A DNA stretch of 64,000 nucleotides from Macrostomum lignano. Its lineage: Eukaryota. The stretch covers positions 480,460 to 544,459 of the forward strand of contig NIVC01000301.1 of assembly GCA_002269645.1 (NCBI GenBank), given 5' to 3'. Positions within the stretch are counted from its first letter, which is position 1. Each line of letters opens with the position of its first letter. The translations under genes and the position numbers were made by a program. The notes beneath the pieces were generated by a model, which worked only from the letters and a program-made list of their open reading frames with translations, was not told the DNA's origin and did not search any database. Positions 468-24,407 of the stretch are shown here, piece after piece.

Positions 468-3041
468 TTAGTACTCTCCTAGGCATTGCGTGTTCAGGTT
501 TGCAAATAAAAAAGAAAATGGCACCGCCATCATTGCGACTCCGAAGATGACGAACGCTTTAAAGAACACCCGATCAGCGGAAGATCCGACAGTCTTCCAT
601 TCGTTTTCGACAAAACTGGCGTTGGAAGTCTGTGATGCCGATACGTCGCCATCCGCATCGGCTGTGGTGCGTGTGACTGTCCGCTTAGAACTTTCTCCGA
701 CAACGAATCTGTTGAGGAAGAGTGCACGGACGACCCGGCTGCTGACGCTGCTCTCCTGTCTGAAGTGACAGCTGAGAACGAATGCGTTGCAGAGCACATT
801 CAGGATTGTCATGACCACGGCCAAGCTGAAGTACCAGGCTGGAATGTGAGGCAAGTGTCAAATTCAGATAGACTGCTCACGCAATGGAAGCAATCGAGAG
901 ACTCACTGATGAACGGCACGGACTCGCTCTGCGTAGGCGTGTAGTTGCCAACCAGCTGCAGGAACACGCACATGGACAGCACGATGGTGATGCTGAAGGA
1001 GACTCGCTCGCCACACTCTGGAGGCAGGCAAAAGGCGAGCGCGGAGACTCCAAGGAGAAGAATGCAGGGCAGCATCAGGTTTATCATGTAGAAAATCGGA
1101 AGTCGCTGCAATTACGAGCGTAGAATTCCTAATCTAGTATTTCATGTTTCTACGAGTAAAGCATGATTTCAAGAAATTGTACCAAGATCTGGACAACAAC
1201 TCACTTGAAATCCGACCCGGAGCTCGGCTGTGTCGTACAGGCCAAACGATCCGTTTTCTAGCCGGGCCCACAGAATGCAGAACTCGCTGCTCTTGATGAC
1301 GAGCACATCAGGCGCATCATTCTGGTACAGGGACTTGATGCGGACTCGAGTCGATCCCGTGACTTGCTGCAGACTCGAGAGCCTGACGAGACAGTTTTGC
1401 TCATCGAACGGAAACAGCTGCATTTGCATGCTGCACTTGGTGGACAGAATCATTCCTGTGCTCCACAGCACAATGCCTGAGGACATCACCGAAAGAATCG
1501 CGCGGCCCTCTGTAGCGTCCGAGATTTCCACCCTAGAGTGAATTGTTTAAATGAAGGCACTCATTGAGAGCAGTTTCAATTCGTCAGTCGTCAGAACGTC
1601 AGAACTTAATTTCTTCAGTAGTCTCTGCAGTGCATGCATCAAGCAGGATATCTTTTTTAGTTTGATTGAGTAGCTTTTTATTTAATCCATTTGCTTGTAG
1701 AGCGTATGTCCGAGACACAAAAATTTTGTTGCACTGGGATACCTGCAAAGGTTTTCCTAATTGGGTTATTTTATACCTAAGTTCGAAATTTTCCCTTTAT
1801 CAGTTTGCGTTGCCTTAAGAAGTCCAAGGTTATGGCCTCTTCTTTCAATGCGTCGATCCAACGCTGAGCGGAAGAATTAAAATTAAACAGAATTAAATGG
1901 CGCTGAATGGAGTTGCAACCGCGAGCACGACAACAGCTCGAGTTTAACATTGAGCTGCTCCTTTTTCAGTATTAGTATTAATCAGTATAATAATAATAAT
2001 AATGAATAAATTATTATACAGTATTAATATTGCTAATGCACTATGTTCGAACATATCGACTCCTATTTAATGAGAAGTTCTATTAAACTCTCAAAAAATA
2101 ACGTCGATGTCCCTAAGCTACTGAACTAAAAAGCTAAGCAACCCACGTCGGGTTTTTTCGCACAAGTGACGAAAAACAGCGGTCGCACTTCCGCAATCTA
2201 AAGTGGCCTATCTAGCGAATGTATCATCTATTGTGGTCTGTAGTGTTGAAAGCAACCGGCATGTTCTCGATATCTTTTTTAGGTCCAAGCACTGAACCAT
2301 ATTCACTAATTCTCTTTTGTTAAATTTCAAGTTCGAGCACGCGTAAAACAACTCACGCATCGTAAAAGGATGCGTCAGGTTGCCACAGGTACGAAGCCGG
2401 AAGGCTGATTGCGCTGATATTGTCCAGACTGGAGTTGAACTTTCCTTTCCAGGCCAGGCGACTGTCGGTCCAGTGCTGCAATTACAGCTCATTAAAAATT
2501 ATCTCTGCAAGGATTGAAAGGAATCTTTCTTGTATCAAAGGTATCTAAGACTTAAAGCTTACCACGTTAAGCCACACCATGAGCTTTATTTCCTGTTTTG
2601 TGGAGTCCTGAAAGAAGTGTCAGAAAGTGGGTCATCCATTTACGAAAAAAAAATCTGCGTATCAGAATTAATGAGTGATTCGAGTTCATTGAGCATCGAA
2701 ATACGATTAGTAAACCTACAAGCAAGCATACAAACCTTAGAGATTTAGTGTATTAGATTATGCTGAAGCAGGAAACGGAAGAAACTCGAAAAGGGATGCA
2801 CTAAAAAGCTTAGCATGACTCGTTTAACACAACTGCTCACCACTTTAACGATGGAGTTCAGGTAGATGAAGACGTTGAGGGTGTTGGCGAATCCGCTGTC
2901 AGGTGGCGGTCGGATTGCTTTGTTATACTCGGTGAAGAGCTTCAGCGCTGCCGCGACGGCATCGTCAGGTGAGGCGGGCGATGCGGCCGCTGACACAGCA
3001 GCACCGAGCAAGGCCAGGCAGATGAGGAGTCGCGCCGACAT
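468..3041 (-). CDS. Divergent Cys-loop ligand-gated ion channel subunit A (nAChR-like, cation-type), ~420 aa, 6 exons
   Basis: Exons 3041-2841, 2607-2563, 2475-2357, 1532-1205, 1105-907, 838-468; all GT-AG and in frame (1263 nt). Signal peptide MSARLLICLALLGAAVSA, WQPD loop A, Cys loop CSMQMQLFPFDEQNC, M2 GERVSFSITIVLSMCVFLQL, M4 preceded by EWKTVGSSADRVF. The 45-nt second exon is typical of nAChR genes. Confidence 0.93.
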
Positions 3042-21883: not shown

Positions 21884-24407
21884 CTAATTTTGCTGCATTG
21901 CTTGTAGGCAGCGACTGCGCGGCTGCACAGCGTAGAACCCAAGTGACACCGCCGTCATAATGACCGTGAACGCGTTGAAGGTCCAGAAAAACAGCCAGTC
22001 TGCCGCGTCAGCAACAATCGCCCATTCATTGGCTTGAAGACTTGTGCGGCTGGTGCCGTAAGGCGGATCCGAGTGCTGGCTTGAGGCGGTCTCACTGGCG
22101 ACGGTATTGTTCGTTAGGTTCCTCTTGGCCACGAAGCGGTTGAGAAAAAGCAAGCGGATGAGCCGGCTGCTCACCCGATCGCCGCTTTGCTGTTTGAAGT
22201 GGCAGCTGATCACGAACGCGTTGCAGAGCACATTTGAAATTGTCAGCAGCACCGTAGTCATGAAGCAGACAGCTGAAATCATCATAAAAATTTTGAATGA
22301 CATTAAGCCTATCTTGCCAGTTCACGGATTCTGCCCGAATATCTTAAAACTCATCAATTCTTAGGCCAGCTGAGTGAATTCCCTAACAATAAAGTTGTTT
22401 ATAGATTTTTTGCACCGCAAGTGCATGAAGGTAATATTATTTTTCAAACACGCGTTTTAATTGTTAATCCGATCTCAATCCAGATAGATATATAGGTAGA
22501 TATGATAGATATATAGATAGATAGATAGATAGATAGATAGATAGATAGATAGATAGATAGATAGATAGATAGATAGATAGATAGATAGATAGATAGATAG
22601 ATAGATAGATAGATAGATAGATAGATAGATAGATAGATAGATAGATAGATAGATAGATAGATAGATAGATAGATAGATAGATAGATAGATAGATAGATAG
22701 ATAGATAGATAGATAGATAGATAGATAGATAGATAGATAGATAGATAGATAGATAGATAGATAGATAGATAGATAGATAGATAGATAGATAGATAGATAG
22801 ATAGATAGATAGATAGATAGATAGATAGATAGATAGATAGATAGATAGATAGATAGATACATAGATAGATAGATATATAGATAGATAGATAGATAGATAG
22901 ATAGATAGATTTGCGTTGTTGTCAAGGGATACCTATCCAAAAGCTTGTGATTACACTACTTGCGCACAAATTTCTTAGCATTGCAAAGGACTCGTGTGTG
23001 TGGTAACTGAATTAATAGAGACGTGAACGAGCCCTTAGCAGTCATTAGCTAAAAAGTGTCGAATATCTGAATATTCTGAGCCCTCAGAACAAGAGTGTTA
23101 TTCTCACTGATGAGCGGCACGGACTCGCTCTGCGTGGGCGTGTAGTTGCCAGCCAGCTGCAGGAACACGCACATGGACAGCACGATGGTGATGCTGAAGG
23201 AGACTCGCTCGCCGCACTCGGGCGGCATGCGGAAGGCGAGCGCGGAGATGGCGAGTAGGAGAAGGCAGGGCAGCATCAGGTTCACCACGTAGAAGGTCGA
23301 GGCTCGCTGAAATGGAGAAGCCAGTCATCATTTAATATCCTTCTCTGATCCATCAGCAGTGTTTTTATAAAAAAAACTTGCTTTAAATTTTATCCGAATG
23401 GTTGGTGTGTCCAGTCCGGTTGGTTCACCTGACACCATTTCCGCAGAAAGTACGCAAAATTCATTGTTTCCAATGAGGTAGTTATCTATGGCTGCGCCCT
23501 CCATCAGCGACTTAACTTGAACTCGAACAGTGTCTGGAGCCAGTTGGGGCAGGAGTGGCAGATGGCAGACCTGGGAGTCGAATGGAAAGTACCGCATGTC
23601 CATATCGCACTTGCTCACTAAGATCAGCGACTTGCCGATTTCAACGATCCCTGCGCTCGTCACTTGCGCTAAAAGCATGTTGATCGTCGTCTCCTTGACG
23701 CTGATGCTGAGGTTTAAAAAAACTTTACTTTATAATTCTCCTGACAAAAAAGAACCGGACCTGAACAAAGAGCTACTCACGCGTCGTAAAATGAAATGTC
23801 CGACAGCCAGAGCATGCTTGCCGGCACACGAATCAAGGATACGTTATCGAACCTTGAGTTGAACGCACCGAGCCACTTGAGTCGCGAATCAGTCCAAAAC
23901 TGGAATGGATTATAAAATCTTTTTTTCTTGTTTTGTGCACCTTAGTGAGTAAATTTCATCGTATAAGTGAGCATTTAAAAAGCTTTTGAGGCTGATTTTG
24001 TTTGCTGAATCAAGCACCGTTGATACGTGTAGTTAGACCGAAAAAACTGACCTAATTAAAGAATAATTTAATTATTCTTCTCACCATAGTGAGCCAAACT
24101 TTCATCGTTATCTCCTGACTCGAAGAGTCCTGCAATGTTGCAAGCATCAAGTTAGATTGTAGACCCTGTTTTGGCGTATTTAGCGAGACAAATTTAAACT
24201 GTTAATGCGGTTTCTGACCACTTTGAGTAGATTGTTGATGAAGACAAACACATTGATAAGGTTGGCAGTTCCGTTGTCTGGCGGTGGCCTGGCTGCACTT
24301 TTGTAGTCTGTCTCCAGCTTCAGAGCTGCCATTATCGCCTGGTCTGGAGACGCGTCCTCGGCTACGACTGCGGCAACGACGAGAAAGAGCAGGCGGCCGC
24401 CGCTGAT
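21884..24407 (-). CDS. Divergent Cys-loop channel subunit F; frame intact but no in-frame ATG
   Basis: Exons ~24407-24219, 24129-24085, 23899-23781, 23706-23382 (GC donor), 23306-23108, 22272-21884; no internal stops. ATC occupies the position of the paralogs' ATG (ISGGRLLFL vs MSARLLICL). Confidence 0.8.
22505..22910. repeat. (GATA)n microsatellite in intron 5 of subunit F
   Basis: ~100 GATA units. Confidence 0.98.

Follow-up and report, generated by a model that had tools for sequence, protein, structure and literature searches.

A 64,000-nucleotide stretch of the genome of the flatworm Macrostomum lignano (hereafter, the window; assembly GCA_002269645.1, contig NIVC01000301.1) contains six paralogous Cys-loop receptor genes, A to F, all of which lie inside its first 24.6 kb and were located by tblastn with the exon peptides of one gene. 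Exon 5 of each gene carries the same 58-nucleotide (nt) sequence. A preliminary description of this DNA drew attention to that identity and proposed that recurrent gene conversion homogenises the pore module while the ligand-binding exons diverge, naming an RNA-level constraint as the alternative. We find that the 58-mer is the core of a 120-180-nt segment encoding the end of transmembrane helix M1, the M2 pore helix and the M2-M3 loop. The pattern of variation around it, together with that of a second receptor cluster in the same genome, points to short-tract gene conversion between neighbouring copies.

Six Cys-loop receptor genes in the window

The exons of gene D were read directly from the sequence, giving six exons separated by GT-AG introns of 77-917 nt. 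Genes A, C, E and F were modelled by homology, with GT-AG introns and conserved intron phases required, and gene B was delimited by exon-wise nucleotide alignment to the five intact genes. The resulting models, in window coordinates, are as follows.

Gene A, 468..3041, minus strand: intact subunit of 420 amino acids; exons 3041-2841, 2607-2563, 2475-2357, 1532-1205, 1105-907, 838-468
Gene B, 5401..7261, minus strand: pseudogene; exon 5 at 6225-6026
Gene C, 9605..11422, plus strand: intact subunit of 418 amino acids; exons 9605-9805, 10016-10060, 10140-10258, 10378-10705, 10791-10989, 11058-11422
Gene D, 12267..14788, plus strand: intact subunit of 427 amino acids; exons 12267-12470, 12548-12592, 12672-12790, 12871-13198, 13284-13482, 14400-14788
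Gene E, 19483..21196, plus strand: intact subunit of 422 amino acids; exons 19483-19692, 19830-19874, 19959-20077, 20162-20483, 20551-20749, 20823-21196
Gene F, 21884..24545, minus strand: frame open throughout; exons ?-24219, 24129-24085, 23899-23781, 23706-23382 (GC donor), 23306-23108, 22272-21884

Exon lengths of 45, 119, approximately 328 and 199 nt are common to the intact genes A, C and E and to gene D, and exon 5 (199-200 nt) encodes M1, the M2 pore helix and the M2-M3 loop in each of the six genes. Gene B had been called a pseudogene from the outset, rightly so: it carries three frameshifting indels, two in-frame stops and an insertion of about 190 nt in its M3-coding part, and one of its frame breaks sits within exon 5, upstream of the conserved tract. 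Gene F has a GC-AG intron 4 (window 23376-23382). No in-frame ATG was found in its exon 1 (window 24219-24545), whose frame stays open back to 24545; the start may lie in an upstream exon or a trans-spliced leader, or gene F may be 5'-defective.

Several introns are unusual in length. Intron 5 of gene F (835 nt) consists largely of an (AGAT)n microsatellite of about 107 units (window 22482-22910). Intron 3 of gene A (1533-2356) measures 824 nt versus 119 nt in gene C, and intron 5 of gene D (13483-14399) measures 917 nt and contains a 36-nt direct repeat (13489-13524 and 13809-13844). The long introns of A and D are probably insertions that followed duplication.

The predicted proteins are recognisable members of the Cys-loop family. 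Pieces of gene D match Pfam Neur_chan_LBD (PF02931, 1e-10) and Neur_chan_memb (PF02932, 4e-23), and relatives have both domains as well. Alignment of the five proteins A, C, D, E and F reveals the Cys-loop C-x13-C with FPFD in all of them. The best match among solved structures is the serotonin receptor subunit 5-HT3A (E = 7e-41), followed by the nicotinic acetylcholine receptor subunits beta2 and alpha7; M2 of the window genes starts GERVSF like that of 5-HT3A, with G-E-R aligned between them and the glutamate preceding the helix as in cation-selective members. Judged by these predicted proteins, the genes are Cys-loop subunits of the cation-type 5-HT3/nicotinic-like branch. Knowledge of the family suggests that they may be cation-selective, ligand-gated and part of assembled channels.

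In fold, domain order, Cys-loop and helices M1-M4 the window proteins resemble 5-HT3A and the neuronal nicotinic subunits (8bl8, 5kxi, 7koo), from which they differ in being only about 25-30% identical and in having a short M3-M4 loop. The alignment of the five proteins also shows one cysteine at each of two further places, an N-E-F-C motif towards the end of the ligand-binding domain and the position directly after M4 (C-L-G/Q); the vicinal cysteine pair of nicotinic alpha subunits is absent from all five. These cysteines might allow an extra disulphide. The nearest database proteins are uncharacterised M. lignano proteins; the window genes belong to an uncharacterised branch expanded in M. 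lignano, whose members are annotated merely as "Neur_chan_LBD domain-containing protein". Gene E is identical to the UniRef entry P0003 at 367 of 367 aligned residues, and a fused UniRef model, P0010, matches C, D and E at 214/215, 346/357 and 403/404 residues. In P0010 a single protein combines C, D and E with sequence from the 15.8-16.5 kb interval, which suggests that something between D and E may be transcribed.

A uniform segment in otherwise divergent genes

The 58-mer occurs exactly six times in the window, without a single mismatch, where dinucleotide-preserving shuffles give an expectation of 0; no further copy was found in the window when three mismatches were allowed. The initial report of six identical copies is therefore accurate, as is its assignment of them to exon 5 and M2. 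A six-way alignment extends the similarity beyond the 58-mer: from about 16 nt upstream of it to the exon-5 donor every pair of genes is 94-99% identical, whereas past the donor intron identity drops to about 30%, A/C excepted. High identity up to the donor had been claimed and is borne out; the length had been understated, as the 58-nt core is real and the frozen region around it spans about 120 nt. The tracts lie as follows.

Tract A, 907..1025, minus strand: 58-mer at 952-1009; begins 16 nt upstream of the 58-mer and ends at the exon-5 donor
Tract B, 6026..6144, minus strand: 58-mer at 6071-6128; E/F-like similarity reaches upstream to about nt 23 of exon 5
Tract C, 10871..10989, plus strand: 58-mer at 10887-10944; A/C identity of 96-100% continues through intron 5 into M3
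Tract D, 13364..13482, plus strand: 58-mer at 13380-13437
Tract E, 20631..20749, plus strand: 58-mer at 20647-20704; run of 121 nt shared by E and F (codon columns 290-330)
Tract F, 23108..23226, minus strand: 58-mer at 23153-23210

Outside this segment the genes are far apart. The six had been described as highly divergent, which holds for five deep lineages and fails for A and C: these two are recent duplicates, with 84% amino-acid identity, 92% nucleotide identity in the ligand-binding exons and a synonymous divergence (dS) of about 0.2 in exons 1-4. All other pairs (hereafter, deep pairs) share 49-54% of their protein sequence. At the DNA level exon 5, with 85-94% identity over about 200 nt, is the only part that can be aligned in every pair of genes; identity is 71-77% where exon 6 begins, and introns are alignable for A/C alone. 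The earlier statement that extracellular exons and most introns are barely alignable as DNA thus stands, with A/C as the exception.

Proportions of synonymous (pS) and nonsynonymous (pN) differences, computed by the Nei-Gojobori method (NG86), sharpen this picture. In deep pairs pS is saturated in exons 1-4 (0.70-0.82) and in exon 6 (0.6-0.8). Within exon 5 it amounts to 0.4-0.67 in the M1 part (0.18 for E-F), to 0 for every pair in the 58-mer and to 0.09-0.23 between the 58-mer and the donor. The M3 helix serves as an internal control: there pN is 0.12 while pS is 0.71 (0.5-0.8 in deep pairs). A sliding-window analysis of synonymous divergence had been suggested as a check; in windows of 20 codons across the four deep intact lineages, pS falls from 0.7-0.8 through 0.52, 0.50 and 0.31 to 0.03 on M2, and climbs back to 0.45-0.71 from the start of exon 6.

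Codon identity tells the same story. The preliminary description argued that selection on the protein could not freeze 19 wobble positions; the 58-mer in fact spans 18 degenerate codons and one ATG, and the argument survives the correction, as protein-level selection and codon bias together are insufficient. Counting columns in which a degenerate residue is invariant in all five intact genes, we found one codon in all genes at 16 of 80 columns outside exon 5 and at 18 of 18 in the 58-mer (Fisher P = 1e-10). The corresponding counts are 5/18 in M1, 4/15 in M3 and 8/10 in the loop.

Probable gene conversion and its alternatives

Relationships among the genes change at the edge of the tract. In exons 2 and 4, where the frame of B is still open, E-F (29%), B-E (29%) and B-F (26%) are among the most distant pairs at the amino-acid level, and the nearest gene to B is D (39%). 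The same three genes, B, E and F, cluster closely over the M1 portion of exon 5, at 89-95% nucleotide identity. Exon-wise trees, proposed earlier as a check on conversion, thus conflict: the exon 5 grouping is at odds with that of the ligand-binding exons. A permutation test modelled on GENECONV detects a run of 20 consecutive polymorphic sites at which E and F agree, over 121 nt (P <= 2e-4). The left boundary of the tract is graded and specific to each pair: it lies at about nt 23 of exon 5 where B is compared with E or F, further along in E-F, and some 16 nt ahead of the 58-mer in A, C and D.

Although the recent duplicates A and C are 92% identical in exons 2 and 4, their identity in M1 falls to 81%, no closer than A-E or A-F (Fisher P = 0.003). 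One block of 94-100% identity runs through exon 4 and gives way to 36-72% over the end of exon 4, intron 4 and early M1; a second block, at 96-100%, extends from late M1 across the 58-mer, intron 5 and M3, beyond which identity is lower again. We read this alternation as a recombinational mosaic, because constraint cannot raise divergence above the duplicates' own background, nor can it act blockwise on introns.

Base composition and the pseudogene add to this evidence. The G+C content of third codon positions (GC3) reaches 0.95 in the 58-mer and 0.87 in the loop. Exons 1-4 give 0.64, and residues elsewhere that are just as invariant give 0.67. At nucleotide columns that are otherwise invariant, B has changed in 22.9% of cases outside exon 5 and at 5 of 10 columns in the first 22 nt of exon 5, as against 3 of 144 in the remainder of exon 5 and 0 of 58 in the 58-mer. 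When intact genes are left out one at a time, they themselves differ at 10-17.5% of such "invariant" columns, leaving B with an excess decay of 5-13 points. Retention of the tract in B rules out explanations that require B to be translated, and in other respects it is supportive and of moderate weight, not decisive.

A second cluster provides an independent replicate. We reached it by a profile search followed by cluster look-up via P0158, an NCBI-annotated M. lignano protein that belongs to the family and is 28% identical to gene E. DNA encoding P0158 lies on three contigs of GCA_002269645.1 (L001-L003), each with three tandem paralogues, the upstream two of which lack annotation in the NCBI record. 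The locus L001 is representative, and L002 and L003 are arranged likewise.

L001, NIVC01000984.1:465518-486120: second receptor cluster; homogenised tracts at 993-1893, 5313-6018 and 11681-12297

Between these paralogues exon 4 has a pS of 0.74-0.88, a pN of about 0.4 and 34-40% amino-acid identity, while exon 5 has a pS of 0.02-0.04 and 98-100% amino-acid identity. By blastn they share one alignable tract only, of about 600-900 nt at 96-97%, which starts some 40-60 nt upstream of exon 5, takes in all of intron 5 with a simple repeat inside it, and ends about 190 nt into exon 6. The homogenised sequence differs from the window 58-mer at 16 of 58 nt, and the window version was not found in any of the loci L001-L003. 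Homogenisation of the same exon to two different sequences, in one case across an intron, argues against a shared RNA or DNA element; the two-cluster pattern has the signature of local concerted evolution. Nor do the uniform residues appear to be universally required, since other M. lignano paralogues at 44-53% amino-acid identity to the window genes, which is the window genes' distance from one another, carry substitutions in M2 at 1', 3', 4' and 5' and in the loop. A search of metagenome contigs with a fully codon-degenerate pattern for the M2 core returned 0 matches.

Taken together, these observations favour recurrent, short-tract, GC-biased interlocus gene conversion between clustered copies as what keeps the 120-180-nt segment of exon 5 uniform, an explanation to which we assign a probability of roughly 0.8. 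The original proposal of recurrent conversion of the pore module amid diverging ligand-binding exons is thereby upheld, by tree incongruence, the A/C mosaic, the E-F run, the GC3 of 0.95 and pseudogene B, and by the second cluster above all. Homogenisation appears to be blind to coding, as it takes in intron 5 in the second cluster and in A/C and, with moderate weight, pseudogene B; deep pairs in the window stop at the donor.

Several points weigh against this explanation. Among deep pairs E-F alone passes the run test, and the significance of A-C is trivial; a GENECONV analysis had been suggested earlier, and it is significant for E-F and not significant for the other deep pairs, because the test drops sites invariant in all copies, which make up the core. 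There is no variable site inside the 58-mer, so that conversion there is deduced from its flanks and from the second cluster. The argument from pseudogene B is only moderate, the probability of 0 changes in 58 columns being roughly 0.05 to 5e-4 after calibration. The tract in deep pairs stops exactly at the exon-5 donor, as exon-level constraint would also predict, and, compared with other animals, about 120 nt of homology is little for ectopic recombination. Finally, the distant paralogue P0158, at 28% amino-acid identity and on other contigs, uses the same codon as the window genes at 8 of 9 shared degenerate residues of the 58-mer span, CGA included, and has a 17-nt run identical to it; the baseline of codon sharing outside exon 5 is 38-51% (one-sided P 0.004-0.03), and M1 and the loop give 7/12 and 4/9. 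Biased conversion probably pushed both tracts towards G/C-ending codons, for which we roughly estimate about 5.5 of 9 matches, leaving a marginal excess that is not fully explained. Preferred-codon or nucleotide-level selection may contribute in the C-terminal half of M2.

Another possibility is that the tract is an RNA or DNA element (a structured RNA, an editing duplex, a splicing enhancer, a small-RNA target or a protein-binding site) preserved independently of the protein code. Such an element would account for the sharp end of deep-pair identity at the donor, the retention of the tract in B and the codons and 17-nt run shared with the distant paralogue. Yet folding against shuffled sequences gave no excess stability (z = -0.34 for a 141-nt region containing the tract, z = +0.63 for the 58-mer), the best duplexes of the 58-mer with the rest of each pre-mRNA fell within the range of shuffled queries at sites inconsistent between genes, and no Rfam family matched anywhere in the window. 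RNA structure and complementary pairing thus find no support in these tests, and what is left of the RNA-level alternative raised in the preliminary description is the weak codon-sharing signal; for a protein-binding or small-RNA target site in the tract we have no positive evidence. Constraint of this kind also sits poorly with a second cluster homogenised to another sequence over a whole intron with its simple repeat, and could neither raise the M1 divergence of A and C above that of their background nor bring B, E and F together in exon 5. We therefore regard it as very unlikely. A related possibility, that translational selection on codon usage combined with strict amino-acid conservation fixed the same preferred codon gene by gene, draws on the very high GC3, on the fact that most tract codons are the family's commonest for their residue and on the frequent use of the same codons by the distant paralogue. 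It is hardly credible all the same: family codon usage gives a probability of about 1e-24 that four independent lineages agree at all 19 columns, the similarly conserved helices M1 and M3 agree at far fewer, and the codons themselves are mixed, with valine encoded once by GTC and twice by GTG, serine twice by TCC (15% usage) and once by AGC, and arginine by CGA. B, moreover, has kept the tract although it cannot be translated in its present state, its frame being broken earlier in exon 5.

The uniformity could instead date from a single, fairly recent replacement of exon 5 that spread once through the cluster and was followed by ordinary divergence. The identity of the core in six copies, the few private changes in the rest of the tract and the restriction of significant pairwise runs to one pair would all fit. 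A single event would not produce left boundaries that differ by pair, the A/C mosaic adds separate events, and the second cluster has an independent, longer tract; by our own estimate, the loop pS predicts about 6.6 synonymous changes in the core, where 0 are observed. We consider a one-off event quite unlikely. M. lignano is repeat-rich and partly polyploid, and pooled reads from paralogues might in principle have erased copy-specific differences from the consensus during assembly or polishing. Apart from the multi-copy nature of the tract nothing directly supports such an artefact, and it is scarcely tenable given the copy-specific variants that lie all along M1 and, within 1-3 nt of the 58-mer, on its right side in A/C and on either side in B; pooled polishing would have erased these too. 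The second cluster repeats the phenomenon on three contigs, where single-base copy-specific variants in an exon 97-100% identical are reproduced, and the M2 peptide of C, D and E is the same in P0003 and P0010, models from a different M. lignano assembly or haplotype whose D part has several residue differences.

Recurrent conversion could sustain itself as follows. M1-M2, as the most constrained part of the protein, would have diverged slowly, leaving an island of DNA homology sufficient for heteroduplex formation. Conversion would start and end only within that island, because introns and ligand-binding exons are too diverged, which would make intron 5 a sharp limit on the right in deep pairs and leave the left boundary graded. 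Each event would renew the identity that allows the next, and the 58-mer would be the overlap covered by every conversion tract. Pseudogene B would be overwritten passively, any conversion or mutation harmful to the pore would be purged by purifying selection, and biased conversion would push third positions to G/C. Purifying selection on amino acids may by itself suffice to hold the pore conserved, with conversion persisting simply where homology persists. Selection may favour uniform pores for the sake of co-assembly, as the preliminary description proposed, or may just put up with conversion that does no harm.

A bolder interpretation is that M. lignano Cys-loop clusters in general follow a design, maintained by selection, of conversion centred on exon 5, in which each cluster keeps its own uniform "pore cassette" and the ligand-binding exons are free to diversify. 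We think this unlikely on present evidence. If it were true, subunits of the same cluster could co-assemble around a homogeneous pore with combinatorially varied binding sites, a constant-pore/variable-sensor architecture achieved through conversion and not through shared constant exons. The 17-nt run common to M2 of both clusters could in turn mark a nucleotide motif that promotes conversion or is otherwise functional.

Surroundings of the cluster and comparison with known systems

The receptor genes are interspersed with repeats. Between pseudogene B and gene C lie a perfect tandem repeat of 30 nt x 6.9 (100% matches; 7650-7855) and a segment of about 430 nt (8598-9031), probably a dispersed repeat, that is 71-74% similar to 29996-30384. 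Downstream of gene D there is an inverted repeat of 65 nt (94%; 14962-15026 and 15666-15730). Adjoining the cluster is a tandem gene pair on the minus strand (26217-29066 and 31032-33774), each member having ankyrin-repeat exons and a caspase (Peptidase_C14) domain; the segment at 29996-30384 falls between these two genes. A homologue search with one caspase open reading frame (ORF) returned no matches at E <= 1e-30. The right-hand 23 kb (40899-64000) consist mostly of many different minisatellite arrays with periods of 18-106 nt, and have very strong compositional skews between strands and a GC content of up to 0.60. Examples of the arrays and two ORFs of this region are listed below.

41496-42710: minisatellite array
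53022-54636: minisatellite array
60531-61256: minisatellite array
61684-62403: minisatellite array
63473-63998: minisatellite array
43750-44232, minus strand: ORF weakly similar to a mariner-type transposase DDE domain (23.1 bits, under the cut-off of 24), probably a transposon remnant
62655-63500, plus strand: ORF matching an SOS1/NGEF-like PH domain (1.5e-11), amid satellite arrays

In the literature searched we found no report of gene conversion in Cys-loop receptors or in M. lignano, and conversion goes unmentioned in the main paper on the nicotinic-receptor expansions of lophotrochozoans. Regional conversion as a process is well known; what is new here is the gene family, the very short tract, the depth of the surrounding divergence and the replication in a second cluster. 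With its internal control, the window is a clean illustration of how small an island kept up by conversion can be, and it suggests that in an expanded invertebrate Cys-loop family the pore-lining exon can undergo concerted evolution within clusters while the ligand-binding domain diversifies. It also carries two warnings: phylogenies, scans of the ratio of nonsynonymous to synonymous divergence (dN/dS) and screens for "ultraconserved coding elements" in expanded receptor families will be misled by such tracts, and frozen synonymous sites need not mean an RNA-level function.

One of the closest precedents is found in teleost protocadherins. Clustered protocadherins of fugu undergo regional conversion, for which raised GC3 was used as a signature, and they have been read as a case of repeated regional conversion while the recognition domains diversify (PMC1852091); for zebrafish, Noonan et al. 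2004 is cited there. Like the window cluster, teleost protocadherins are paralogues arranged in tandem, whose "diversity" domains have diverged while one region with sharp limits is nearly identical at synonymous sites; in both systems GC3 is raised and homogenisation is specific to each cluster or subcluster. Protocadherin tracts, however, measure about a kilobase, make up the 3' part of one large variable exon and are shared by fairly recent paralogues, whereas the window tract has a 58-nt core (120-180 nt in all) inside a 199-nt exon, in genes otherwise saturated at synonymous sites; an intron limits it on one side, and it belongs to pentameric ligand-gated channels of a flatworm.

A second precedent concerns ion channels. 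Non-allelic gene conversion has been described among paralogues and duplicated exons of newt voltage-gated sodium channels, in a study that also notes the low power of GENECONV-type tests for short tracts (PMC8476164). There too, events are short (about 100 nt or less), occur preferentially between tandem paralogues, involve coding sequence of the pore region and were identified by GENECONV-type tests. The outcomes differ: in newts a few adaptive toxin-resistance substitutions were spread among two or three copies, whereas the window cluster displays complete uniformity of the pore helix over six copies, a pseudogene included, with no evidence of adaptive change.

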